NCBI RefSeq assembly: GCF_031769215.1
Contig: NW_026781997.1
Location: 62,001 to 126,000, forward strand
Direction: 5' to 3'
DNA from: Ylistrum balloti
Lineage: Eukaryota
DNA length: 64,000 nucleotides
Of the stretch, positions 16,741-35,905 are shown one piece after another (the stretch's first letter is position 1; each line of letters starts with the position of its first letter). The notes beneath the pieces are model-generated. The model was given only the letters and a program-made list of their open reading frames with translations, did no database searches and was not told where the DNA came from. Both the position numbers and the translations under genes were made by a program.

Positions 16741-19700
16741 GCTTTAGTCCATTTGATCACACACTTTGTGGTAAGAGGTGGGCATAACAACTAGTGTTGT
16801 TTCGATTAATCAAGTTCATTGAGGATCACTTATCCGAGATGCTTGATCAATTTATTAAGTAAGAAATCTGTAAAAGATTTTCATAAAAAATACTTGACAT
16901 CGTGATGTAAGAAAATAAATTATTTCAACATTGAAATTATTTTCAACATTAATAAAATTATTGAAAAGTATTCTGTGCAATTTACTTAATAACAAGCACA
17001 CAAAAAGATGGTTTAAGTACACAACAGTTGTCGTAATTAATAAAAATGCAGTTAAAACATTTCACATAATACATATTTAGACTTGAATAATATCCAAAAC
17101 AGACTTTAATCGATAATCCGTCAGTTACACAAAGTTGATGATTGATCAGGAAATTTCAACAGATTCCTAGTACTAATAACAACACTGTTATACGGTATAT
17201 ATCAATTTATATATAAAGACCTTTAAACTTGAATTGACCTACATGTAGCTATCCACGGTCTACATGAGGGTGTCATTGATGTAGCAGAAGACGCTTAAAC
17301 ACTTCAGGAACACATGGATCTTATTCTTGTACTTTTTTCAGGGACTCTCCAAGTAGAGCTTGCCTTTGTTTTGATGTTGCCCTTGATTTAATGGTGATTA
17401 ATTGAGTTTGAATTATGATTTTGTTAGCATGTTGGTATGGTATTTGTTCTCATTTACAAAGGCTTTAAAAACCTCAAGCAATATTAAAACCTTAAAAGTG
17501 AAGTTGATAGTAAAGAAACTGGAACATTAATCTGATTGTTTCTTAATGTTTTGTTGATCTTTTGAAAATTATGATAATTGGTCACTAACAACAGAATTCC
17601 TTTTTAATAGTAGGGTCAGAATACCAAAAAATTAAAACAAATTGAAAATATTTTTAACTTTGCTTAATTTCTAAATTTCACAGAAAGTACGTACTCCATC
17701 ATTATAAACAGTTTATGACAAAATTGACTGAGAGATTTGTAAAAAAAAGGATCTTCATTGTTTTGACAATGTTTTGTCAAACTTGAGTATTTTTTCTCAT
17801 AAATGTTCGTCTGAACATGCAGTTTTCCGTGTGGGAAATTTGAATTTCTGTACATCATTATTTTGTTGCATGTTACTGTTTCGCATACTTTTTTTCATTT
17901 CTGTGGGTTTTTTTTCTTCTTCTTTTTTGGAATATTCCACTTGAGTTTATTTATCAGCAATGGACATGAGGTAGACAGATGAAACTTGTTTATTCAAAAT
18001 GCATAAAACTAATTCAAGTTTCATTGAGTAAACATTACATTCATTTTTTATTATACTGTACATGTAGAAATAGAATTTGTGGAATGTTCCAATTTTGTAC
18101 ACTGTAAAATATTATCAGTGAGATTACACCAAAAAAGGTGGCAACTCTAAAGGTTGAAGTTTACACCACGTCACATAACACCAAAAATGGTGTTAACTGG
18201 TTATTGCAGCTGTACACTTAATTTAGATTTATGTAACACCATCTTCAGTGTTTACATACACCAGATATGGATTTATGTAACACCCTCTTTTGTGTAGATA
18301 AATATGTACACCAGACACTGATTTACAGAACTCCTCTTCAGTGTAGAAATACACCAGATAAAGGTTTATGTAACACCCCTTTTCTTGATTTGGTTCTAAA
18401 TACACTCGATTACTTGTATTAGAACACTGCATTATGTATATTTATTTGTACACTCTATTTGAACCAATAAAAAAGTACACTAATGAGTTATCAAATTGCA
18501 CTAGATAAAGATGTGCTGCCTGACAACAGAAAAAAAAACAAATATGCTAATACAATGTTATTATCAAACAATATTCCAACTGTATATGTTCTGATAAGCA
18601 ATGTTTGATGTTATATATAATTATTATGAATATTGCTGTATCATTATCCTAAAAGCTATTAGCATTGAGCAAGTAATAATGGTCATCTAGAGTCATTACA
18701 TGATAACTACAGTGTACTGTATGTGTAAAGTTGGTTGTTTTGTTCCTGCCTTCCAATCCATAAACATCAATGACAAATACAGAATATAATTACACATATT
18801 TATTACAAATCAAAATTCAATTACTGAATCATAATTTCAAAAAATAAAACAGGAAATTGTACCTTTCATCTTCTCTTAAATTCGACTTTCAATTGTATTA
18901 CAACACATTTGATTTCCAGTATCTTGGACATTTTCTCCAATTAAATCAAAATGATATTCAAAACTTTCAACAGAATGTAATTTCCTTGTATTTTATAGTT
19001 CATTATTCAAATCTTTTATAACAAGAGGCACAAAAGCCAATATGGTCACCCAAGTTCTACAAAATGAAATTTATCCTGGAGAATAATATCACAAAATTAC
19101 TACAAACACAAAATTCAATTCTTGAATTATCATTGCAAAATAAAAATCACACATTAAATTGTATCTTAATTGATTTTTAACACATCTGATATTTGGTATC
19201 CACATTTCTATCAATATGACATTCATTTATCAACCTAGCATCTGCATGTAATCAGCTTGTATTAAAACTATTTAGTCCATTATTCAAATATTTAACAACA
19301 AGAAGCACATTTCACTATTGGATAGAATTATGCAGCTAACAGACCCAGTCTAATATTTTTGGAAACTAAAATCAGCACATTATATAAACAAGTGAAAAGT
19401 TTTCACTGGAATAAACTGCCATTATTATGTTAACATCCTATAGTTTTTCAATGCAATCAGGCTAACGTTTTTACTTTTAAAGTCAAATAAAATGAAATAT
19501 TAGATCTATGTCAAAAGACCTTTTCTTCTCATATCTGAAAACATCTATCATTATTAAATATTCAGATTCTTTGTAGTATTTTGGTACCAAAATTAACTAA
19601 GATTACTTCATCAATTGTCCTATGGCCTATAATGCATACCCAAGCATGTTACTTTAGAAACTTAAAATTCTTCATGATGTAGAGCTTAAACAATAAAAAA

Positions 19701-20347
19701 CAACAAACAGCCTGGTGTTGGCATATTTAAAGGAGTTAAGGAATTATACATGTATACACTGGTGAAAAGCATTGATCGGTGAAAGATATTTCACATCAGA
19801 TCGTAATTTTGTTTCCAGAACAATAAAAAATGTCCACAAAACAAAATTCAATAAAATCAATTTATATCAGAAATCTCAAAATTGAGATAAATGAAACAAT
19901 AAAGCAAGTACAAAGTTACCATTGTACATGTTAGTCAACATACAATACTGGTATACAGTAACTGTATCCATTTAACATTTGTTGAGCCTTATATAAACTT
20001 TAATAAAAATGCACATTGTATCACAAAAATACATTCATAATAACTGCACCTGGCATGAATATCAACAGAAAATAAAAGGCAGATGGACAGAGAAGAAAAC
20101 TTCAGTGCCTAAGTTGGGGATTAAAATATCACATGATACCAGATTATTGAACCACAAGGCTTATCCCAGTTTTTAAAAGACAAACTGTTAAACTTGAATA
20201 AAATGCTTGAGGATATACTTAATCCATCTCACATATTTATAAAAAAAAATATATTCATTACAATTATTACACTTTCCAAGTGCTAAATTTTGATCAATTT
20301 CAATTTGAATAGTCTTGTGTCATTTAACTTCCAATTTAACACCTTCT

Positions 20348-21951
20348 TTACGTTATCCAATAGCTAGGGTAAACAGAAATCATGGTCTCATTATACTCCT
20401 GGCGTAAAGACCTATATTCTGCCTCTAGAAAATCTTCTGTATAAACACTCAGGGAGATAGAGACAAGACTGTCAGACAATTTTTCTAGCAACATTCTCAA
20501 CTCATCTGGCCAGAACTTTATTCCAGCACAGTCCAAGTGGCCAATACCTTGAGGCATAATGGCACATATGTATGTTGCAGTAAGCTGTGTATATGAAATA
20601 TCAAGAATGAACAAGTTTCTCAATTTGCTCAATACAGTGAAATCTTCATTACATAAATTGGCACAGCTTGACAACAGAGGGTGTGAAGGTTTTCCATGTT
20701 CACAAGAAAGCTTAAGGTTGACAAGCACACACCATGTAAATCTAACCACACAATGTATTTTGCCTTTGAAAGACCAATGGTGAGATATAAGTCTAATTCA
20801 GGTACCGAATGGTTCCACACCAAAAAAGGCAATTCTACACAATGAAAAATGTGCGCATGTTTCATCACCATTTGTAATGTTTCTGGGGAAAATGTCAGAG
20901 GTTCCTCATCGTTAAGTAAGTCTTCTCCTGGAAAATGGCGCCATAATGTGGAGTTTTCATGGACAATTTTGTGGAATAAGCTGCATACTGGGGTGACATT
21001 TCTTATTAACTCTACAAGGCCAAGGTTGCGGAATATCAATACCAGGATTTCACTAGGTAGCTCACAGATGTTTCTTTGGGTTACCTGAAAGCAAATTTAA
21101 TATTAAATACAATTTAAAATTTGGCATTTATTATCAAGTAACAAGAATTCCACGGAAGTGGATGTGTTGCCTACAGAGCAAGGTGAGAAAGCACCATGTG
21201 AAGTTTGAAGTTGATTGCCTAAAAGGAACTTAAGTTATCGCGAAAAACCTCCTTTTCTATTTATAGTAACAGTCACCTTGACCTTTGACATTTGGACCTG
21301 AATAGCAAGCATGAACTTTGGTGAGGAACCAGGTTATGAAGTTTTAAGCTGGTGAGCCACAGGGAACTTAAGTTATCATGAAAAAACTTATTTTCTATTC
21401 ATAGTAACAGTGACCTTGACTTTTGACCCTTGGAGCTGAAAAACAATCCCAAGCAAACACTTTTGGTGAGGAAGCACCATGTGAAGTTTGAAGTTTAGGG
21501 AGAATAAACTAAAGGCTGCTTTCCCCAGGGGAATTTTTATGTATTTTCCTAATTTCATGTTCATATTTTCCCAATCAGAAATTAAAATGTCCCTTTACAT
21601 CAGTTGATATGAAGAACTATGTCCTATGTTCAACAACTTGCAGCAATACCGTAACACATGGTGATGCCAGGGTAACAACATAGCTCCCTCTCTCTACCGG
21701 AGGTGAACTAAAATTTATACCATTCTGGCCCTGCCACCTGGACTATCAAAACCCTATTATTTTCTTGCATGAGTTATATATTTTTTGTTTGTGTGTGCTC
21801 AACCTTGGAGTTTGCTGATTACTTTCAACAAATACTTATACAAGTGTATAAATAAAGATTTACTCAAATGTATATATTATATACTTACATCTTTGTGGTT
21901 TTCTTTAGTTTCTCCATGAGAGAGATGGTTTTCCTTGTTGGCTTGGTGCAT
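20348..21951 (-). pseudogene. F-box/leucine-rich-repeat protein carried inside the CACTA element (one frameshift)
   Basis: Exon 21951-21889 (MHQANK...HKD, GTAAGT donor) splices in frame to 21084 'VTQRNICELPSEILVLIFRNLGLVELIRNVTPVCSLFHKIV...LWRH' (F-box). LRR-like 'WLDLHGVCLSTL', 'NLHTL-LSSCANL', 'LRNLFILDISYTQL'. One-base frameshift near 20675. Confidence 0.85.
21140..21720 (+). repeat. AACAAG-headed Helentron/HINE-type repeat in the F-box intron
   Basis: Internal ~120-bp degenerate tandem units (GCACCATGTGAAGTTTGAAGTT; GGAACTTAAGTTATC; TGACCTTGAC); ends AGCTCCC...GAGGTGAACTAAAA. Confidence 0.6.
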
Positions 21952-24109
21952 TTTAAATGAAAGAAGTTTTCAATCATGCAGAATGTATTTTGAACTTCCT
22001 TTTTGTATTTGATGTTTAAAATGAAAAAAATATGACATCAGAAGGTAAATACTCTCAACAACATCATCCGAGTCCGAAAGGAATTCTCTTTCTCCTGTAA
22101 TGTAGCATGTACAATTTCGAGAGTGGAAGTCCCCCACAACTACAAGTACTGGAGCTCCTGTTTTCTTAAGGCTTTCTTTGTCTGTAGATTCCTTTAAAAA
22201 AGAAAATTAAAAGTTTAAGATAAGTTAAAGCTACCACATAAATCTAAAGTTGTTACGAAAATAAAGCAACTGAATGAAGCAATACTTGTAACAATGATAC
22301 CTGTAAACACTCTAGTGATATAAGCTATTATGTGCTAGATCTACCATATTAGATTCCGATTATTTTCACCACTCAACTGTACTTCTACAATTGTTACAGC
22401 AATAACTAAACATTAATCAGCCAATCATCGACATTAATCAGCCAATCAACTTAGAGAATAAGGAGCCTAATCAAGCCATTTGTTTAAATAATTAAAATCC
22501 AAATATTATCTATATCATTATAAAGTAAAACACTATTTCAACAAGCACAAATTTCTATCAATATTGATGGTCTTACTCTTCAATTGTCAAGAATTATCCG
22601 TTTCAAGAAAAAGCTTTTTAATGGGAAGATAACAGACATTAAACCAAAGAAGAGATATACACTGATAATATGCTTGGTCTAAATCAAATTTGTTGTGACA
22701 AAATTACAGGACTTCATAATTTCAAGCTCTTGACAGATTCGTAATGACCTTTCTCATTGACAGGGAACAGATAATATGCATCTTGCATGTTCCTCTTAGA
22801 GTTAGTATACATATAGTATCAAACTTACTGGAACAACAGTCAAAAACTCAGCAAAATCCTCATCCAGAAGATCTGGAAGGAGACGAAGGCCTGCAATGGA
22901 CTGGTTGTAATGAACATCTCTTCCCAGAATATTTGGATCAGACTCCAATTTCTCCTTCAATTCAAGAAGAACAAGTGTCATGTGGGATGATTTCTTTTTA
23001 CGTTCTTTTGCAAGCGATATCAATGCTATAGCATACTTGTGGACATTTTCCATGAATGCATCTCTGCAGTCATTTCCCATCAGACGTTTCATTTCATGTT
23101 GCACCTCCTGGTTTTCTTGAAGAGCAGGATAGCCTGATATAATATCAGCTATAGATGGACCGGAATTGATAAATGACCTGCGAAAGGCATAGGTCTCTTC
23201 CATCAAATCAGTAACTAATTTTTTGTCTCGGAGAACCTTTTTCATTTCATCTTTAAGTATTCCAGCCTTTTTTTTATAATCAACTACATTTTTATCACAC
23301 ACTGAAGGTGCCCAATTGATACCACGTGCACTGTAAGTTTGACGATTTGCAGATGATTCATTTGGCATTTTTTCTCTTGGAGTTTCACTAGGAGATTGCA
23401 CCTCTGTCAACTTCCTTTTTGATTTCCTTACAGTTACTTCAGGAGCTGAACATTTTCTTCTAAAATTCTTCAACTGGTTGCGAACAGATTCTTTCCAACC
23501 GTCATATCCACTACCAATAGTTTCTCTCAAGTATGGGAATGTACGAATGATGCATAAGCCAACCTCTTGAAGTTGAGCACTGGTTGGGTAGTACGTATAT
23601 TCCAGAATAGAAGTTGTCACCATTTGTACAAACTCGTGTTTTAATGACCAACTTAAGTCTTTTTTGGACTTAAGTGCAACTTGCAAAGTTTGTGAAAAAT
23701 TTTGTGTGGGCAGGGAATATACCAATGGCCACTGCTTAAAATTACTGGAATCCACACTTGATGAACAGCTACTGGTAGATGCAATTGGACTCAAGTCCAA
23801 TGAACTGCCACTGCTACTACACTGAGAAATGTTATCAACAAAACTGTCATTTTCTGATGAACTGGCAATGCTCACAGGTGTAGAAATCTGCAGACATTTC
23901 AGTTTGTCTTTGTGCCTAACTGGTGTTTCCTCTGTTACTTCGAAGTCAACATATTGTTCCCAGTCCTGGTCATAACGTTGAAGAATCAGTTTTGAAGTTC
24001 CTAAATTGAATGCATCTGCTACTTTCTTGTTGATGTCATCTCCTTCATTTAATCTCAACACTTTGTTAGATAAACCAAAAGAAACTAACACATCAACTGG
24101 GGTACCCAT
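21885..24109 (-). CDS. EnSpm second protein (SAMD3-like, lacking a SAM domain)
   Basis: Exons 24109-22829 and 22191-21885, joined in phase 0 by GT-AG. Motifs 'ILQRYDQDWEQYVD', 'WPLVYSLP', 'YTYYPTS', 'SGYDGWKESVRNQLKNFRRK'. Tail 'YFFILNIKYKKEVQNTFCMIE' needs a one-base fix in a T-run near 22030. Confidence 0.82.
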
Positions 24110-25869
24110 GTCTGAAAAAAAACAAAGGGTACTTCACCACTGACACAATACTTTTTCACAAGCAGTCGATATACATTCAAATCTTCGTAAAATGGCATAC
24201 CATTAGTAACAGCAATCACAAATATAGTCAAAATTTAAACAATTTCTTGTATTTAAACAATACGTTATGACATGTTAGAAGCTGTGATGTTCTTTGAAAT
24301 TATGTAAGTACATGTATCAATTGCAAATTTGACAAGTACATTTCATGTATTGTTAAACAAAACCATACTGAACAATCTGGATACCTTTTCTTACATTGAC
24401 CATCATCATTTCACAGGAATACACCTGGAGGTTTTATTCATTTAGGATCTTGCACCAGCATAATATGGAACTTAATTATCATGCTTTCTGAATACACAGT
24501 AATGGACCTTCATTAACATGCTTTCTGAATGATACAGTGCCTTTTTAAATAAACTTTTCTAACTGAAATCAATTGAGTATATCTTAGTCCAATAGAATCC
24601 AAGGGTCAGATGACAATAAACTGAGCTGTAAGACATTAAGTCAGAATCATATCCCAACACTTCATGTGTACAGGTTATCTACCAATCAGAAATGTGTACA
24701 TGTTGCAAAAAAAAAAAAAAGATTTTTCTCACTTAGAAATACAACAAAACATCATTCAGCATGAAGAAACTCCATATTACACAGATACAAACAAGATATT
24801 TAAGACACGCAAATAGGTCAGTTACTTTTCAGAAAAAATGTACATGAAATTGAAAAATTCATGAATAAAGGTAACTATGCAAACTGTAGTATTACAGAAA
24901 TAACTAAAAACTTGTTCTGGTGAACAAAACACACATCTCCTCTGTTTTTAGTAGGATGAGTGTGATTTGATATAATGTGAGCTCAACATCAAACCATCAG
25001 TAACTGTGCCCAGCAGAGGATAAAAATATTTACATTATAATTCAACAAATACTATGAAAGGTAACTTATGGCATAAAATAATAATCCAGGTGTATTATGG
25101 CAATAACAGTTGAGACCCTGAACTCTGCAGTTATTAGCCAATAATTAATATAAGGAAACTTTGCATGCATTGCTCACCAAGGACAATAACTCTGAAATCC
25201 AAAACATAACTTATTTCAACTGGAGTATGAAAGGCTTCCAAGTTGGGATATGCCTTATAAATTTCACCTTTATTTTTACACATAGACTTTAAGGTTACCA
25301 AATGCAGTCCCAAATGGTATTACAGTGTACATCAGCTTTAGGGAATAAAGATGCACAGTAACTTTCATTAAGAATATCATGTAAGTTTTGAGGTTAAGGC
25401 CGAAACAAAAAACTCTTGTAAAAAGTCTTTTTTTTACCTTGAACCTCAAGGTCAAAGGAATCTAAAAGTAGTACACCACACACCGGCTTCAGGCGATGTA
25501 CCCATATTTCAAGATTTATTAAGATATCTTTAAGGGTTTACTAGCAGTTATGGCCAGGATAAGATTACTAGAATATCAAGAACAAGAACCAGGAACTGAA
25601 AAAATGTCTCCATTCATTCAAAGGGTAGACATAATTACAACTATGAAATTGGAAGCACTGACACATATGTATGATATGCCCATCATAGCCCTTGCAGAAA
25701 TTTACACAGATTAATTTAAAGCAGCAATGTCAAATGTAAATGCAAAACAGGTTAAATAATATTCTAAACTGTAAGAGTAGACTAGTTGTGCACAAAATGG
25801 CAAAAACTTCATATCAATACCCAAGACTGGCAACTAACGAAAGGTTTAATGCGGAAAGTTGAGAATATA

Positions 25870-26550
25870 CAGTCAAACCTGCTTTAGATGACACCTCCAT
25901 ATAAAGGACACCTGTCTATAAAGGACAGTCTCAGGAACCCCCAACAAGTTTTACTATATAATTTACCTCTATATAAAGGACACTCTCTATAAAGGACACC
26001 TGTCCATAAAGGACACTTAGAAATTTCCCGAAACACTATTTTCTATGTAAGATAACCTTTACTTAATGGACACCCATACAAAACTTGGAGACAGAAATTT
26101 CTCTCAGATATAAATCCTGGCTTTCCATAATGAAGTATTATAGTACATGTATAAGATAAATCTAATTACAACCTGATATATTTTATATTACATTTTATTT
26201 TAATCTCATCTTTGTTGATTTATTAAGCTAACCACTTTGTGTATTTTTCTACATGACAAATTCTATCAAAGCAATAAGTTAATATCTGCCTTACTTGAAG
26301 TGGAAGACAAGTGTGTATGGTTTGTGTCTGCATGGAGACACTTTAATTCTTAATTTCATTGACACTAATTAATTCTACTCTGACCATGGTGTATGTAAAC
26401 AATGACAATTTACACCATTCATTTTTATCATATTGGCTAAGAATCAAAATTGTGAATCTGATTTGATAACTAATTTTAAAATGTTAGTGATCTCTATATA
26501 AAGGACACTTCTGTCATTTCCCCAGTGTCCTTTATACACAGGTTTGACTG
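25870..26550. mobile_element. Tc1/mariner-pogo type MITE, 681 bp
   Basis: TA|CAGTCAAACCTG ... CAGGTTTGACTG|TA: 12-bp perfect TIR with TA duplication; internal ATAAAGGACAC repeats; non-coding. Confidence 0.9.
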
Positions 26551-29500
26551 TACAACAAAATCCTTAATACATGTTAAAAATCATTGCTTAGTGAAGCAAC
26601 ATACCAAATTTGAGAAGAATTGAAGAAAATATACTAAAAAGTTCTAGCATTTTCTGTATAATTTACATGATATATTATAATTATCTGTAATTGTACCAGA
26701 TTCAAATACCCAAATGACCATAACTCTAGTAAACACGGTCCAATCAAACTGCCCTTCAGGAAATCACAAGGTAATGTTTATTTTTATGTCTAACAATATT
26801 TGAAGGAAATTTGTTGAAAACTAAACAGATCTGCAGACAAACAAAATGTTTAGGATACCCGTCGTCAAATTGACGGGCATATAAAAAGCGCATGTTTGGG
26901 TAGTTGTATCACATGTACACACATGGCGAAGCTGATATTGGATTATTCCCTTAATAATGATTTAAATCAATAAAAGTGGAACATTCTTAGTTAATTGGCA
27001 GTAATCGCAAGACCATTCATTACATACAAGTATAGAGTTTACTTACCAAAAGCAAATGAACATTGTTTTCTTGTCTTCCAGTATCAACTTTGATATGATA
27101 AATGATGAATAGCAATCAAAAGAAAATAAGAACCCATTTCTGTGATGGGTAACAGTGTAAGAGGACAGCTCATTCATTTTAACAAGCAAGTCAAAATCTT
27201 CACATAAAACAACATAAATACTTGCAAATGGAAACACCATTTCTGAAGAAAAAGATTCTCTTTGTTAATAAAAATATCAATATTTTAACAAGTCAATTGT
27301 CATGTTTTCCTTCTATTCATGAATTATTTTCAAGTAAGATCTAGTGATCAGCTTGCAGCTAAGGTGCCAATACAACCTGATTACATTGCACAGCATGTGT
27401 ATAGATTCTAAATATGTATGTATACACAATATCTAGTGCAAAAGATTTTTGAAAATCCAACTGTCAACTGATTTGAAAATTAGAAGCAGAAAGCATTGCC
27501 CTAATTAAACTGACATACTGATTATTAAAGTATATTTCAAAAGGGCCCTGGACTGGCTGGACCAAATTATAAATGTTAGACTGATGATAGATCTGTTCCA
27601 GATAACTGCAAAATATATTAATAATTCCTTACTGAAATGAATGTATGGAACTGCAATGAGGGGAAACTGCAATAATTGATGATAAAGCAAAGCATCAATG
27701 AAAATCAACATGCGTGTCCCAAGTCCCACGTACTGAAAGAATCCTGATGGGAATGATTAACAAAGAATTTCTAAAAATACCTAGTTGAAAAAGACTTGTG
27801 AAATATATTGTAGATTTATCACTGGATGTATAAGTTTTAAAGACATAGTTTGAAAAATAAGAAAAACAATTTTGTAAACACTATAGTTATAGTCTTCCAA
27901 CTTTCTCAAAAATTAGCTCAAAGACAAAATTGAGGGATGAACATCTGGACAAGATTATTAAAAAAAAGAAATGCTGAAAAGGGAGATAACTTTTTAGCCC
28001 TATAACCACAAAAATATTAGTTTGTAACTCAATATTATGAAATGTTGTAGGCTCTTTTGGAATCTTGTACATGAAATCAGGGTATGATTATATAGCCAGC
28101 CTTACAAATTTTGAAAGAATTTCATTTTGGTTTAAAACTGAGAGTCGAGATCATCTCAAAAATATCAAAATTTAAATTTTTTTTGTTTTGTTTTGTTAAA
28201 AGTAAAACCCAAAAGGCAGTTATTTGCAAAACACAGTAGTTCAAGGGAACACAGCTAAAATTGACATAGTAGTATATAAAACCAAACAAGCCTGGGGAAA
28301 CTGTGTAGAGATTTGTTGAAACTCCGAGTTTTGCACACAAATATATATATCATAAAACAGTTTAATGGAACATGCCTGTTATCCTGCACTGTTTACAATT
28401 CCCCTATTATGTTGAAATATTTTGCTATGACTGATAATTAAACACCTGTCTGACGACAATGAAATACAACCAAAATGCAATGAAAGCGATAATTTCAATT
28501 GCTTAACTTACATGGGTAATATCAACTTTAAATCTGTCAGTTGTACCGTACTTCTGTTTACATATTGGCTTGTGTGCAGTATGGTAATACTAATAGCCGA
28601 CTCCGAAAACCAGTGAGCAAAATCCGCAATTATAAAACTTATAATGGTGTTGAAAATTACAACTACTGATATGTCTTTTGTTGCTTTAAAACATATTTAT
28701 CAAGAGGACATTTTCATTTAAATTTTCCTTCTGTATTAAATAAAGTTGTGAAAACAATATTTTTACTAAAAATAACAATTTACGATTCCTCAAGTCATAT
28801 CAATGACAAATCGGTCTCATGCTGTACATAGTGTACCGGGCCTCTATTTGAGAGCCATATCAACATCCATTCACATACAGTGATGGTATCTGAATCAAAG
28901 CAAACTTTCACTGCACAGGTTTCTTAGGTAAAATAAGGTCATAGAAATGTCAAATGAAACTGAAAAAGGGAAAATTCACCACAAGCTCAGGGGTTTGATG
29001 ATTACGATGTTAATATACAATCAAATGCTACCAGAAACAGATTTAAATTTAATAGGATAATTTGGTGAGTTTCTTGAAGTATGTCATCATCACTGTCGGT
29101 GTGTGTATTTTCCCAAAGAGTGAATTTTTTGGTCTACTTAAGTTGACAAGATTGATGGCCATGTTTACGCTCTTGTTCGGTAATAAGCCCACCCCCCAAC
29201 TTTTGACTTGATTTCATGTGCTGTCCCCTTGGGCTTGTTGGCATTGCTGGAGAAATACTGCAGACACCTTGACTGAAGATTTTAAGTAGATACATATTTA
29301 ATTCCACGAAAAAAATTTAATTTGGCTTTCAAAAGATAACCTAAAAAAGAATGGGATATAACTCATAAGTAAAAATAGCGAGTCAGGTAATCAGGTTGTA
29401 AACTTTTTCTGAGCTAATAGCCTAATAGTGGATTAATAAAACTGGGAGAGCTATAATTATTCATAAAGGATGAATTGTAACTTAGATAACATAATTAGGC

Positions 29501-29875
29501 TTGAAGTCCACTTAGAACATCTGTGGTATACAGTTTGTACGAACTTGAATTTTTGACTGGTAATTTACGACCAGTAATGATGTTTCTCCTGATATGACTG
29601 TTCATCTACATCTTGTGATTCAAGCAGCAAAGATATATATGCATAATTTTCAAATGGCTTTCAGAGAATGGGCATTATCAGGTTGTCAACATTACAGTGT
29701 GTGAAAAGATTCAATCCTTCAATACCATTTCAAACACTTACAAGCTTCAGATTTTGAATGACGGCTTTGAATTTGATCACCAAAAATAACACTGTACTGG
29801 TGTATATTTGACATTGTATGTTAGTAACTGAACCTGATTTTGAGTAATCTTCAGATAAATGACAAAGACTACAGC

Positions 29876-32560
29876 CTATCTGAAAAGCACTGAATGCTTT
29901 AGTACAACATACACAAATTGGTTTAGTCTGTATGGATCAAGTGGACAGACATCTAAAATCTCATCAAATCTTACAGCTTCAACTTTAACCACTTTCAGGA
30001 TTTTGTATGCACGGAAGTGAGGTTCATAAACAGAGTCACAAATTTGCACAACCAGTAATGTCTGATAATTGTGCGAAAACATAGCAATAATCTTTGACAA
30101 AACAATGTCATCACTCTCATAATGATGGACAACAAAACATCCTGGTTTGTATGCATGACCTTTGTAATTCACTCTGTCAAGTTTTGAAAGATATTGCTCA
30201 TTCTTTGACACACCTTTGTTCATCAAAGCTTGACCTACATTAGGATCAAGTGATGCAAGTGCTACATTTGAGCTCTTTAGAACCTCAGAATGGGTTTTGA
30301 AAATATCATTACCACTCGATGTGATGTATGCCTGCAAGTTTTGATGCCTTTGTGCCAATGTGGCATTAATGTTTTTGAAATTTCCAACTCTTAAAGCTAA
30401 CTGTTTGAAATAGCTATGCTTAGCCTCAAAACGCATGCACCAGCAAGTTCTTACAGGTCCGAAGTTCATTATCATCTCAGGATAGTGAATAAGAAAATGA
30501 TGCTTTGATCTAAGATTTTCATTTGGGAACACTTCCTTAAAAAGTTTATGATGATCAATGATCAAAGCCTTCAGATATGCACACATAGCAGGAGACATTT
30601 TTGGAGAAAACGTTAATTCTGTTATATCTTTGAGCAACAGAAGTACTTCCCAAACCTTGCTTTCCTCTGGTATAAACTTGCCAATGATTAATGGCATCAA
30701 ACGTAGTAGGGTCCACATTTGTGAGGCACTCTGTGTGAAGGACGAAATACAAGTTGGAGTCGTCGGTTTAGTTGTTGAATCATGCATACCATATTTCCAT
30801 GTCTGTAAACTGCTCAAAATATCTGTACTTTTAACTATACAATCTTTTTCCAAGGACTGCAACACCAAAGGGACTTCATACCTTGCACAACCTTCCAGGA
30901 TGTCGTGCATGCAGTCAGGTGGAAGCCCACGGGTGACATGGAAATATTGCAAGCTATTGAAAGGCGAGTCTCTTTTGACACCACATACAGAAGTACACTT
31001 ACTACCAGAGTTTACATCCATTTGATGGACATGATGATTGTAATTTTCAACATTCCTACTTTCAAAATGTGTACTATCATAATCTGTCTGAGTGTCCTCT
31101 GTGTTTGCTAAACAAAAGCGACACATGTTTTTCACACTGTAGTTGAAACATTCTACAAAACCTCCAATTTGGTGACTTCCCAAATTGTCCGCACTTATAT
31201 ATGCTAAACTACCAAGCAGATTACTTTCCAAACCAGGAATAGCTGTTCCAACAGTTTCTAATTGCTTCAAATCATTAATTAGTGGCTGCAAAACTGATTC
31301 AAATCCGAATTCTCTCAAGTCTTTATTTGTACATAATACACAAAGTTGAATTGGATTCAATTCTGATCTTTTTTCAGGGCTGAAGTTTCCTAGGGTAAAA
31401 TAAAATGCAGCAATCTTATGAATGCCTTTGCGGGATCCCAATGGATTGACTACTTCAAATTCATCAAAGTACAAAATGACTTGTAATGCATTTTCATGCT
31501 TTGAAAACAATGGATTTTCTCGAAAATATTTTCCATCGCAAAAGTCAACCAACTCCTGTCCATTACTTTTGTGAGAATTCATTACTTCTACTAATGCATC
31601 TTCCTGACTGAGCATGGATCTTATGCTATCTAATATGGGAATGTATTGGTACACTCTTTTGACATGCCTAGAATTTCTTCCTAGCATAACTGATATTGGT
31701 TTAACAACTGTTAAGCTACTTTCCCAGTATGAGTTGCGTCTGGCATTGGTTTTCAGAAGTTCTGTACACTTCTTCAGATGATTTTTACCAAAGACATCCT
31801 TGACAGAACTAACTATATCTCCTGTAATACCCTGCTGTCTTAACACGTTAATAACTTTTGCTTCTGTTTGATCAAATGCCTGCTCATACAAAGAGTCAAT
31901 TTCTTGTACAATAGAATCTACGGTTGAAATCGGCAAATGATTGATTTCCTGCAACTTCAATATCATTAACGCCATTGTTTTTAAAAACTGTTCTTCTGAA
32001 TCATTTGTTCCCTCTGCCGTCTCCTCCCCAATTTCTGAATTGCAATTAGCAAAATTTACAGGTCCGTTTACATTTTCAAATTCGGTTTCAACATCAACGA
32101 CCAAAAACTCCCTTTTTAACTGCAGTACAGTATGTTTTGAATGACACCTATGAATATGGGATCTCAGCGATGAATATATATTGAATGTTTGGGGACAATT
32201 ATTGAAGAGACAAACTGTGGAATCCCCTTTGTTCAGATGTTCTCCTATGTGTCCTATTAGCCGACTTAATGATGGGAATCTTAAATCTGTTGGACAAGCT
32301 TCAAAAGCACATCTTACTTTATTTGAAACGCCGACACTGTCAGACGTTAACATATGCTGCGTGTGAATCGTTGAAGTTGAATGGAATCGGTAAACGTGAC
32401 TTTTGAAAGCACTGAATGTTTTGAAGGTATTGGTACACTGACTGATTCCACATCGTACAAAAAAATTGGGGTCTGCCCTGTGACACCGACTCATGTGGGT
32501 CAAAAGTGTTTTCACATCTTGAAAGTTATCACTTCTATCACAAATTGGACAATTCAACAT
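29876..32560 (-). CDS. CACTA/EnSpm transposase with four N-terminal C2H2 zinc fingers, uninterrupted ORF
   Basis: 935-codon ORF; likely ATG at 32560 (MLNCPIC). Motifs 'LYFDEFEVVNPLGS', 'SADNLGSHQIGGF', 'CRFC', 'PPDCMHDILEG', 'KHHFLIHYP', 'WCMRFEAKH'. Confidence 0.93.
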   Translation of the reverse strand: MLNCPICDRSDNFQDVKTLLTHMSRCHRADPNFFVRCGISQCTNTFKTFSAFKSHVYRFHSTSTIHTQHMLTSDSVGVSNKVRCAFEACPTDLRFPSLSRLIGHIGEHLNKGDSTVCLFNNCPQTFNIYSSLRSHIHRCHSKHTVLQLKREFLVVDVETEFENVNGPVNFANCNSEIGEETAEGTNDSEEQFLKTMALMILKLQEINHLPISTVDSIVQEIDSLYEQAFDQTEAKVINVLRQQGITGDIVSSVKDVFGKNHLKKCTELLKTNARRNSYWESSLTVVKPISVMLGRNSRHVKRVYQYIPILDSIRSMLSQEDALVEVMNSHKSNGQELVDFCDGKYFRENPLFSKHENALQVILYFDEFEVVNPLGSRKGIHKIAAFYFTLGNFSPEKRSELNPIQLCVLCTNKDLREFGFESVLQPLINDLKQLETVGTAIPGLESNLLGSLAYISADNLGSHQIGGFVECFNYSVKNMCRFCLANTEDTQTDYDSTHFESRNVENYNHHVHQMDVNSGSKCTSVCGVKRDSPFNSLQYFHVTRGLPPDCMHDILEGCARYEVPLVLQSLEKDCIVKSTDILSSLQTWKYGMHDSTTKPTTPTCISSFTQSASQMWTLLRLMPLIIGKFIPEESKVWEVLLLLKDITELTFSPKMSPAMCAYLKALIIDHHKLFKEVFPNENLRSKHHFLIHYPEMIMNFGPVRTCWCMRFEAKHSYFKQLALRVGNFKNINATLAQRHQNLQAYITSSGNDIFKTHSEVLKSSNVALASLDPNVGQALMNKGVSKNEQYLSKLDRVNYKGHAYKPGCFVVHHYESDDIVLSKIIAMFSHNYQTLLVVQICDSVYEPHFRAYKILKVVKVEAVRFDEILDVCPLDPYRLNQFVYVVLKHSVLFR

Positions 32561-33803
32561 ATCGGAAACTAAGCCTAGAATTGTAAAAACTACAATTATC
32601 CGCATACTTACTTCATCACTTCTGCGTTGTTCCTCCTCTGAAAAGACCGCCAATATATTTAAGCAGAGCGCGCGCATCAGCAAACCGGAAAAACCAGCTA
32701 CTACTGGAAACGATTACCGGGTTATGAATACGGACGACTTGTTCGCGGGGATGTGCGTTATTTTTCATATTAATTAAGATACTGCTTTTTATCGCTGTTA
32801 TATATTGCTTGAGAAAAACACAGAAATATGGCACCGGGAAACCAGATAGCATTTCAAGTAACACGCGTTCAATGTACGTTTCACATGATATAGATAGATT
32901 CTACCATATCTTGAAATGAGAAATTCAGTCACAAAGGTAATGGTAAATCAGTCTTTCTTCTGTTTGCTATAGGCCTACATGACCAGATCTGTTATAACAT
33001 AGAGTACCTTTGCACGTCAGTCGACATTTTCTTGCAGCAGAATTACACCACAAAGCGTGAACAATTACACCATACTTTCACCACAAAGAGTGTTTTCTGA
33101 AATAACACTCGGAAAATAAAATAAAATAATTTAATCGATGTTTTCTTGAACCAGTGTTACACTTAAAACGAGAAATACTTTCACCATAAAAAGTGTATTC
33201 TGATCATTATCACTACATAAGGTGTAAACATCCACCATTTCCTGTGTTACTCGAACTACATTTTAGTGTAATCTCAATTTACACTTATTTAGGTGTACAA
33301 TAATTAGAAACCACCTTAGATCGGGAAATGTTACACACTGGTTACACTTATTCTGGTGTTAGGTTACACGACATTTTTACAGTGTAATACGATTGTAATC
33401 CTTATAAGTTATATTATCATTTATATTTATTTAATTTTAAAATGGCGAATTATCACTCATAAAATCATGTTCTGTCAAAAAACTGATGTCCGTCAACATG
33501 CTGACGTTTAACCTGGTGTGTCTGTCAAAACAAAGACGTTCATTATAACATTTCTGTCAAAATCGTGACGTTCATAATAATATGTCGGTCAAAAAAATGA
33601 CGTTTGACAACAAAAACCCGCGAAACCTCATATCGTTTTGAAATTCTCATCGGATTCTGTCAAAAAATTAAACATTGGATATAGGTTAGGGCCTTCTGTG
33701 ACAAAAACAGCATAGAAACATGTTTGCGGGGTTTCGTGATTCAAACGTCATCACTTGTAAACGTCAGTTAATTTGACAGACATCGGTAATTCATTGTTTT
33801 TAC

Positions 33804-33840: not shown

Positions 33841-34046
33841 ATTTGTTATTGCTAGACATGCAGGGATCCTAGCGGAAGCACTTGGCTTCATCGTAAGGGA
33901 GCTAAGCGTACGCTGGTATAGACCGATGGCGATCGTCAGCGAATGAAATTTCCGAGTTTGACGGACATGACGTTAGTTATTCTTGAGAGCATATTATCCG
34001 TAATTTCCAGGTGATATAGCAATGGCTTACTGAAATGTCCGAGGCA

Positions 34047-35905
34047 CTTAGTTTTCTTTAGTTTGACTCCATAGTCATCTAAACGCTTGAGTGAAGCATC
34101 CAGATTTTGCTGATGGGTAACATCATCTTTCCCGGTTACAAGAACATCATCCAGGATACAACCGACACCATCCAATCCCTGTAGTACAGTTTCCATGGTT
34201 CGCTGAAATATAGCTGGCGCAGATGCTACACCAAATGGAAGTCTGGTGTACCTGTACAATCCAAGATGGGTGTTGATGGTCACATATTTTCTAGACTCTT
34301 CATCAAGTAGTACCTGGTTGTAAGCTTGAGTTAAATCCAACTTTGAGAATTTTTGTCCTCCGTTAAGCTTTGTGAATAGCTCTTCACTTGTTGGCAGGGG
34401 ATATTCGGGTACTTCTAGCACCGGATTTATGGTAATCTTGAAATCACCACAAATTCTAACTGAACCGTCTGGTTTCATGACTGGCACAATGGGTGTTGCC
34501 CACTCTGAACTGTCCACCTTTTCCACTATGCCTGCATTCTCTAAACTGAGAAGTTCTGCACCTATCTGGTCTTTCAGCGCATAAGGTACAGTTCTGGCCT
34601 TGAAAAACTTAGGTTGGGCATTGTCCTTGAGCTTGATTGATGCTGTGATCCCCTTGACCGTGCCTAACTTGTCCTCAAACACTGAATATTTCTGTTCGTT
34701 GATAGACATCATGTTTATTGTTTTCCAGTTAAGTCGAAGTTGTCCTAACCAATTCCTTCCAAATAATGCTGGTCCATCAGCTTCCACAACAAGCAATGGT
34801 AAAAGTTTGGTCTGTCCCTCATAAGACACTTTGACGTTAGCCTCACCCAACACTGGTAATACTTCACCAGTATATGTTTTCAACATTGTCGAGCTGTTTT
34901 GTAGGTTGAATTTTCCCTGGAATTTAGCTCTGAAATCCTTATCAGATATCAATGAAACTGGTGAACCGGTGTCAAGCTCCATCGTTTGATCTATCTTTTC
35001 AATGTCAACAGAAATTCTTATTTCCTTTTGCCCTGTGGACTTTATAGAGAATATCGGCCATACTTCCGAAACATCATCCTGGTCTGAATCCTCAGTGAAA
35101 TGAATCTTCGAACTCTTCTTATGTCTCTTTGAGTCCCCCTTTGTTGGCCTGGCTGAATCAGTATTACATCTAGTACCACCAGTACCTTGATTTTTGGAGT
35201 TACCAGGTTTATCTCTAGAGGTTTTGGATTTTGGGCATCTCTTGTGTAAATGTCCTACTTCCTTACATGTATGACACTTACTGTTCTTGTAGAAACATGT
35301 CTGCGCTATGATTAGACTTACTACAGCGGAAACATTCTTTTGACGCTTGAAATTTGTGAACATTTTCAGCTTTATCCACTCTGTCACCCTTTAACTTCCG
35401 GGCCTCATTTTCAGCCATTTCCATACTCACTGCTATCTCTCTTGCTTTAGTCATTGTCAGAGTAGCTTCGGTTAGGAGTTTCCGTTGTGTAGGGGTGGAA
35501 GACAAACCCGACACAAACCTGTCTCTCAACGCATCATCTAGAAATGCACCAAATTCACAATGTTCACTGAGCCGTCTCAATCCAGCCACATATTGACATA
35601 CAGTTTCATTCGAATGTTGATTTCGTTGATAAAATTTAAAGCGTTCTGCTATAATGAGAGGTTTCGGCTTTAAATGCTGAGAAATGAGTGTCTTCAATTC
35701 ATCATGTTTTGGCGGAGGGCTTTGCGGGAGATGTGAGGTTTCGCACTAGTCCATACATTTTCTGACCCATAACCGTCAACAATATCGACCGTTGTTTGTC
35801 TGCGTCCTCCACTCCATTAGCTATAAAATACTGCTCTACTCTCTCTACATACTCATCCCAGTTCATTTCAAAATCGAATGATTCAATTTTACCGTACACT
35901 GCCAT
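34047..35905 (-). pseudogene. pol: Gypsy-2 gag-protease-RT, frameshifted, lacking RNase H and integrase
   Basis: ORFs 35702..35911, 35278..35697, 33936..35387. 'LRDRFVSG', 'CFRCSKSNH', 'CHTCKEVGH', 'LDTGSPVS', 'RICGDFK', 'KLDLTQAY', 'ILDDVLVTG'; homology ends at 'KLKKTKC'. Confidence 0.93.

Follow-up and report, generated by a model that had tools for sequence, protein, structure and literature searches.

The DNA transposons En/Spm (CACTA) and Mirage end in CAC...GTG and are flanked by a short target-site duplication (TSD); inside their termini they have subterminal repeats, and their DDE transposase is marked by C(2)C and H(3-4)H motifs. The TSD is 3 bp long in EnSpm and 2 bp long in Mirage, and En/Spm makes one primary transcript, which is alternatively spliced. 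The accessory genes known from DNA transposons encode DNA-binding partners, proteases of the ubiquitin and SUMO pathways, VANC and TET/JBP, and such genes reveal the dealings of these elements with their hosts. For CMC elements, TSDs of 2-5 bp and a transposase signature made of DDE, C(2)C and H(3)H have been described, and fungal CMC/KDZ transposons carry TET/JBP dioxygenase genes (PMC12730594). Here we describe a cut-and-paste DNA transposon of the CMC/CACTA type in the scallop Ylistrum balloti, 15.3 kb long, which occupies positions 18100-33384 of the analysed stretch of 64,000 nucleotides (contig NW_026781997.1, positions 62,001 to 126,000; hereafter the window). Its three genes, all on the minus strand, follow each other in the order transposase, second open reading frame (ORF2) and F-box/leucine-rich repeat (LRR) gene. 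We hold with moderate confidence that the last of them encodes an SCF substrate receptor and is the third gene of an autonomous CMC-type transposon; no description of a third gene of F-box/LRR type was found for any CMC element.

The kind of ends, the short TSD, the subterminal repeats and the transposase motifs listed above for En/Spm and Mirage are shared by the Ylistrum element. Four copies of the same family (family A, ~99% identical: the window copy C140, C257, C133 and C695) align exactly to their terminal bases, and the alignment with C133, which is full length and inverted, stops at 33386; C257 is cut by a contig end and C695 is rearranged. The terminal inverted repeats (TIRs) are perfect over 10 bp, CACTGTAAAA being found at 18100-18109 and its reverse complement at 33375-33384, and give the termini CACTG...CAGTG. 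An imperfect inverted pair returned by the repeat search (18095-18134 and 33261-33300) falls short of the true right end (33384), which lies ~85 bp further. The dinucleotide TA adjoins the left end in all four copies and both ends in the window copy and in C133, and the three-base flanks do not match. At both ends, the hexamers TACACC, ACACCA and TTACAC and the heptamer GTAACAC are enriched 15- to 30-fold in the terminal 400 bp and form the subterminal repeats. Since the flanks are unrelated and TA adjoins the end in each of the four copies, these are separate recent insertions and not haplotigs, and the element is a real, recently mobile transposon. Judged from its ends, TSD, subterminal repeats and transposase motifs, it is of the CMC type, with no named family assigned. 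The CACTA label given in the original prediction therefore applies when it is taken broadly to mean the CMC superfamily; the ends are CACTG and the TSD is the 2-bp TA of Mirage-type elements and not the 3 bp of En/Spm. As in the TnpD/TnpA system of En/Spm, the transposase gene is followed on its strand by a gene for a second element protein, probably made by alternative splicing; the element differs from En/Spm also in having no Transposase_21 match by hmmscan and in the added F-box/LRR gene.

The product of this added gene was characterized by domain searches and structure prediction. The main coding exon comprises 245 codons, with the F-box motif LPSEIL...VC...LW followed by leucine-rich repeats. 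The F-box-like domain PF12937 matches the window exon with 37.4 bits (cut-off 24.3, E = 2e-9), and scores of 34.8-39.8 bits, against the same cut-off, were obtained across family A, a second family of the same genome (family B) and a related gene on the JGI contig L058. Among 49 members of the protein family, 42 have an F-box-like Pfam match and 21 an LRR_4 match; LRR_4 or LRR_Zer-1 matches were obtained for the F-box protein and its relatives. An earlier AlphaFold model from five sequences reached a pLDDT of 72 only, and the AlphaFold (AF2) model made with the 49 family members has a pLDDT of 94.1 and a pTM of 0.90. In this model, a three-helix F-box (residues 11-43) is followed by seven strand-helix repeats. 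The best Foldseek match in the PDB is SKP2 in SKP1-SKP2 complexes (TM by query 0.60-0.69), followed by FBXL2, FBXL17, FBXL3 and KDM2A/B; SKP2 is also the best structural match in the ESM Atlas (TM 0.74), and F-box/LRR proteins of giant viruses, an entomopoxvirus and a nudivirus reach a TM of ~0.5 to the model. By sequence and modelled fold, the protein is an FBXL-class F-box protein with a predicted binding to SKP1. The original prediction had named an F-box plus LRR gene at this place, and the Pfam scores above cut-off and the likeness of the model to SKP2, FBXL2 and FBXL17 bear it out. Its location ~2.2 kb inside the left TIR also stands, the exon ending 2248 bp from the left end at 18100, as do its co-orientation with the transposase and ORF2 and the presence of a single indel. 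The latter is a 1-bp deletion accompanied by a substitution at ~20677, private to the window copy, where two overlapping frames have to be joined to read the exon, and absent from the three others; because of this deletion, the window copy of the F-box gene is a pseudogene.

The gene is not confined to the window copy, since it was found in four of four family A copies, in family B and in a third lineage (lineage C). Its intactness, which the original prediction had also put forward for verification, is divided among the family A copies: the 245-codon frame is open in C257 and C133 and broken in the window copy, by the frameshift, and in C695, where a tryptophan codon is changed to a stop. For the other two genes, the window copy has an open transposase and a probably shifted ORF2 tail, C133 an open transposase and an ORF2 whose exon 1 is frameshifted with five stops, and C257 an open ORF2, its transposase region being cut off by the contig end; in C695, both are those of a rearranged copy. 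The three genes were not seen intact together in any of the four assembled copies. In C695, the left arm (18098-21497) runs directly into segment 29511-30492 in inverted orientation, and the stretch 21480-22050 is found ~13 kb away; the junction, from window position 21497 to inverted 30492, falls within a duplicated SINE/MITE-like insert (~21160-21500) of the putative F-box intron. Older A-like remnants with 70-85% DNA identity also exist (C59, C528, C101 and others). Among them, C59 is a decayed copy that retains an F-box fragment, and C528:242315-245557 and C101:129815-142895 (70-80% identity) retain end repeats and a decayed ORF2, with no detectable F-box match in the genome protein search.

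Family B, in the same genome, has at least 7 copies that are 92-97% identical to each other. At five of its loci (C668, C360, C799, C157 and C407), homologues of the transposase, ORF2 and the F-box gene are arranged along one strand in the order known from family A, with identities to A of 43-51% for the transposase, ~32% for ORF2 and 29-35% for the F-box protein. Two family B copies, C68 and C668, have open F-box frames of 256-262 codons; the F-box members C68 and C240 have no adjoining transposase match. Lineage C is represented by an ENA contig (L053, assembly ERZ26273219), reached from a transposase relative of 46% identity, with the full trio at identities of 42% for the transposase, 32% for ORF2 and 30% for the F-box protein. 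The F-box gene of this contig has one stop codon, and three other contigs of ERZ26273219 hold intact 240-aa copies (P0121); TIRs were not found on L053, which is full of a ~230-bp interspersed repeat. Pairwise identities among the three lineages are 41-52% for the transposase, 32% for ORF2 and 29-31% for the F-box protein. The pattern of divergence is star-like for all three genes alike, as expected if the common ancestor already carried the full trio. Alignment between lineages is now confined to the coding segments, similarity in the non-coding sequence having been lost. Since the full-length frames align end to end with few gaps, purifying selection seems to have acted in the active lineages. 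On this comparison of sequences, the F-box gene looks like an element gene kept in three deeply diverged lineages, and not like a stray host fragment.

The origin of the gene was addressed from the host genome and from more distant transposons. Every F-box match with E < 1e-9 in the Y. balloti genome lies in family A, in family B or in an A-like remnant; the next-best match (E = 0.03) covers the F-box motif only, and the protein search found no host parent gene in this genome. No F-box gene was detected by tblastn or by hidden Markov model (HMM) search within 10 kb of the transposase at a sea-urchin locus (L054, transposase identity 36%) or at a further NCBI locus (L055, 33%). The gene is also absent from 80 JGI metagenome loci with 27-39% transposase identity, at least 30 of which have an ORF2 homologue 3' of the transposase on the same strand, and a dozen or more of which offer >3.4 kb of sequence past ORF2. 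As the distant transposase relatives have no F-box gene, it appears to have been acquired once by the ancestor of the clade and then kept. As far as sequences can tell, it is a clade-specific third gene, in a clade found in bivalves.

An ancestral element could also have captured a host F-box gene and carried it ever since without any role. CACTA and MULE elements capture host fragments, and a Drosophila telomeric retrotransposon carries fragments of the F-box gene CG12520 (PMC13534243). The neutral decay within families, described below, and the absence of the gene from more distant elements would also fit such a passenger. We nevertheless judge it highly improbable, given that the gene is complete and alignable end to end in all three lineages (240-256 codons), that open frames persist at 41-52% transposase identity where non-coding similarity is gone, that position and strand are constant and that no host parent exists in the genome. 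The original prediction had posed the choice between a captured passenger and an element-encoded factor; the presence of the gene in all copies, in family B and in a third lineage, together with the lack of a host parent, speaks for an element-encoded gene and against the passenger.

The mode of expression was deduced from splice signals. A strong 3' splice site (polypyrimidine tract followed by CAG) lies immediately 5' of the main F-box exon of family A, and an equally strong acceptor is found 2-8 nt before the F-box coding start in family B, lineage C and L058. Because a strong acceptor adjoins the coding start in every lineage, we suggest that splicing connects an upstream exon to the F-box coding exon, by analogy with En/Spm. 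In the window, a putative exon 1 of 21 codons joins the main exon in phase 0 across a putative intron, whose polypyrimidine tract is 6 bases longer in the other copies than in the window copy (Table 1). This putative exon overlaps the end of the last ORF2 exon in a different frame, and no conservation of it is detectable in other lineages. The same arrangement raises the possibility that there is no separate F-box gene and that the F-box exon serves ORF2 as an alternative 3' exon or follows it as a downstream cistron on one mRNA, in which case its product would depend on the expression of ORF2. In C257 and C133, the last ORF2 exon extends across the putative F-box exon 1 to a TAA lying inside the GTAAGT donor; no obvious promoter separates the two genes, which share a strand. 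Whether or not splicing takes place, ORF2 terminates at this same ATG-TAA and a fusion protein between ORF2 and the F-box protein is therefore not formed, and in lineages B and C the F-box gene has its own ATG just after the acceptor. For these reasons we consider the dependence of the F-box exon on ORF2 very unlikely as a general explanation, a dependent ORF2 cistron being possible in lineage A.

Table 1. Features of the transposon in the window of Ylistrum balloti DNA (positions are those of the window).
Feature	Position	Strand	Description
Left target-site duplication TA	18098-18099	.	TA directly precedes CACTG in 4/4 copies; flanks otherwise unrelated
Left TIR CACTGTAAAA and subterminal repeat zone	18100-18500	+	TIR at 18100-18109
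F-box/LRR coding exon	20348-21084	-	stop codon 20348-20350; frameshifted in the window copy
Putative F-box intron	21085-21888	-	donor GTAAGT 21888-21883, acceptor AG 21086-21085; sequence reading
Putative F-box exon 1	21889-21951	-	ATG 21951 and 20 further codons (21 in all); joins exon 2 in phase 0
ORF2 last exon, this copy	21970-22191	-	acceptor AG 22193-22192, in phase with ORF2 main exon
ORF2 main exon	22829-24109	-	open frame, 427 codons; donor GTAAGT at 22828
Transposase	32560-29876	-	open frame; 894 aa from conserved Met; N-terminal C2H2 fingers and DDE core
Right subterminal repeat zone and right TIR	32980-33384	+	TIR at 33375-33384
Right target-site duplication TA	33385-33386	.	follows CAGTG

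The F-box protein belongs to a wider family, which was reached by exhaustive profile search, a word-index search with the same protein giving no match. The profile search returned ~60 representative clusters of proteins of 200-260 aa that match end to end, among them proteins of the bivalves Tegillarca granosa and Mytilus coruscus; a related-locus search with P0128 gave no match. Two further loci of the family, L056 and L059, are 99% identical over 20 kb and represent one locus seen twice, probably as haplotigs or as a duplicated block. At this locus, a BEL/Pao retrotransposon with 540-bp long terminal repeats (LTRs) lies upstream of the F-box gene (L056:385-8657, L059:418-8678). The F-box gene was considered as an accessory gene of this BEL/Pao element and rejected, the LTRs on L056 (385-921 and 8118-8657) ending 1.3 kb before the F-box gene. 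On the JGI contig L058 (1274-4397), the F-box/LRR gene is followed, after a gap of 95 bp and on the same strand, by a gene for a 766-aa DUF7869 protein, whose Atlas relatives sometimes have a DDE transposase domain (DDE_Tnp_ISAZ013). L058 may thus be a second type of transposon with an F-box gene, and is a lead only.

Several observations weigh against a conserved third gene of the element, and they concern its linkage, its expression and its evolution. The linkage with a genomic context is known from three lineages, two of which are in one genome. In Tegillarca, the F-box gene is a lone exon that sits inside a WD40 gene intron, and no element gene lies less than 10 kb away (L057), and the F-box genes of L056 and L059 (P0123 and P0281) are intact with no transposase within 10 kb. 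The start of the protein is uncertain in lineage A, as no ATG precedes the F-box motif in frame within the main exon, and the NCBI gene set includes the C133 transposase (P0001) and no F-box protein from the Y. balloti genome. Finally, across the four family A copies the F-box exon has accumulated 6 nonsynonymous changes, one nonsense change and one frameshift, compared with 4 synonymous changes, which is close to neutral, and the singletons of family B give a nonsynonymous to synonymous rate ratio (dN/dS) of ~0.7, with internal branches that have no power. The changes within families are neutral decay after insertion, which is expected of dead transposon copies. Between families, dN/dS was not computed, the synonymous sites being saturated. 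In the dN/dS comparison proposed in the original prediction, evolution is approximately neutral within families and gives no direct proof of selection; purifying selection is implied by the open frames that align end to end across lineages.

The two other genes of the element are much more widespread than the F-box gene. In the transposase, the catalytic residues were assigned by position: D407, D499, C521xxC524, H729xxxH733 and E753 are conserved in at least 88% of 37 aligned homologues and invariant in A3. The protein has no match to PF02992 (Transposase_21) or PF18759 (Plavaka) by hmmscan at E <= 0.1; precomputed matches to these domains exist in two relatives only, P0072 (PF02992) and P0044 (PF18759). 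The protein collection holds 262 transposase homologues, from Patella and other molluscs, a spider, a sea urchin, a sea cucumber, a brittle star and many fishes, and the transposase of a sister copy is recorded as "uncharacterized protein LOC132545086 [Ylistrum balloti]". ORF2, a gene of two exons, has homologues 3' of the transposase in family B, in lineage C and in the distant metagenome loci counted above, among them L062, L063, L071, L073, L074, L082, L090, L093 and L114. Its last exon has the motif ...LLMS.Y..(F/L)N.(E/K)Y... in common with family B. The window copy, alone of the four, has an extra T in a T-run at 22030, which shifts the ORF2 frame to a premature TGA at 21972-21970; either the base is a genuine mutation or the homopolymer may have been misassembled. 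The other copies read on in frame as far as the TAA at 21887-21885. The name "SAMD3-like", proposed for this gene from the first reading of the sequence, is not supported: Pfam finds no SAM domain, and the sole homologue from the word search has no name. The only Pfam match of ORF2 is a weak one to Forkhead, a winged-helix domain (E = 0.02). On the strength of these homologies, the transposase and ORF2 form the core shared by a large group of metazoan transposons. The spacer between the two genes (24110-29875) measures 5.8 kb in the window copy and ~0.5 kb in family B, and probably holds nested insertions such as the inverted-repeat pair at 25965-26543. Outside the element, 550 bp beyond its right end, an open frame on the minus strand at 33936-35387 has an RVT_1 domain (E = 8e-20) and a CCHC knuckle and belongs to a neighbouring retrotransposon.

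From these data we propose the following mechanism. To a core made of a DDE transposase and ORF2, one bivalve clade would have added, and kept, a protein of ~240 aa of the FBXL type. This protein would be made from a spliced transcript, its F-box would dock on the host SKP1-CUL1-RBX1 core, and its seven LRRs would recruit a target protein for ubiquitination, to the benefit of the element. Candidate targets would be of two kinds, a host factor that restrains the element by silencing or restriction, and proteins encoded by the element. The host silencing proteins named in the original prediction could be the target, as one possibility among several.

The second kind of target defines an alternative, in which the F-box protein is directed at its own transposase or ORF2 and not at a host defence factor. 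Such an adaptor could clear the post-transposition complex or restrict activity to a window of the cell cycle. It is known that SCF-SKP2 acts on RAG2 and ties it to the cell cycle; the best structural match of the F-box protein is precisely SKP2, and the transposase belongs to a CMC/Transib-related clade. Moreover, the F-box protein and ORF2 diverge at an equal rate (29-32% identity), as co-evolving partners might. Most relatives of the transposase manage without an F-box gene, so that the gene is dispensable for the basic chemistry of transposition, and we regard a self-directed adaptor as unlikely. In a more far-reaching extension of the SCF receptor model, small SKP2-like F-box/LRR proteins would be a recurrent weapon of more than one transposon type (the CMC clade and perhaps the DUF7869 type), directing SCF against proteins that control transposons in the germline, for example the piRNA machinery, as an animal-transposon counterpart of the polerovirus P0-AGO1 system. 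We consider this generalization distinctly unlikely.

If an SCF substrate receptor is indeed encoded, a stably inherited F-box/LRR receptor in an animal cut-and-paste transposon would represent a new class of accessory gene, and would suggest that transposons hijack the host SCF ubiquitin ligase as many viruses and bacterial pathogens do. A full-text literature search, which did not cover Repbase, brought up no earlier account of an animal DNA transposon with an F-box gene; the nearest items are the F-box gene fragments captured by the Drosophila telomeric retrotransposon (PMC13534243) and the TET/JBP genes of fungal CMC/KDZ transposons (PMC12730594). Identification of the substrate might lead to a host factor that keeps DNA transposition in check in molluscs. 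The proposal lends itself to testing, as the protein is small and confidently modelled, intact F-box copies are available (C257 and C133) and the element was recently active. The group defined by the transposase and ORF2 is itself poorly described, its proteins being annotated as 'uncharacterized' in fishes, echinoderms and molluscs.

Four known systems can be compared with this third gene. With the SKP2/FBXL receptors, the protein shares an N-terminal three-helix F-box and a curved LRR solenoid; it differs from them in having only ~245 aa and about seven repeats, at 11-20% identity, and in being encoded inside a transposon with no ortholog-like host gene. F-box proteins of parasites include polerovirus P0, Agrobacterium VirF, Ralstonia GALA and the F-box/LRR proteins of pox-, nudi- and giant viruses. 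In these cases as in ours, a mobile or parasitic genome has its own F-box adaptor that redirects the host SCF, a redirection that is hypothetical for the Ylistrum element; their carriers are viral or bacterial, whereas the present one is an animal DNA transposon, and there is no sequence kinship beyond the shared domains. Host-like coding sequence between transposon ends is also found in Pack-MULE and CACTA capture, in contrast to which the open reading frame is here complete and conserved in diverged autonomous families (B and C), with no host parent. The VANC genes of VANDAL MULEs and the TET/JBP genes are likewise extra, lineage-specific genes of autonomous DNA transposons, thought to counter host control; the F-box/LRR protein belongs to another class with another mechanism, for which an anti-silencing role is a hypothesis.

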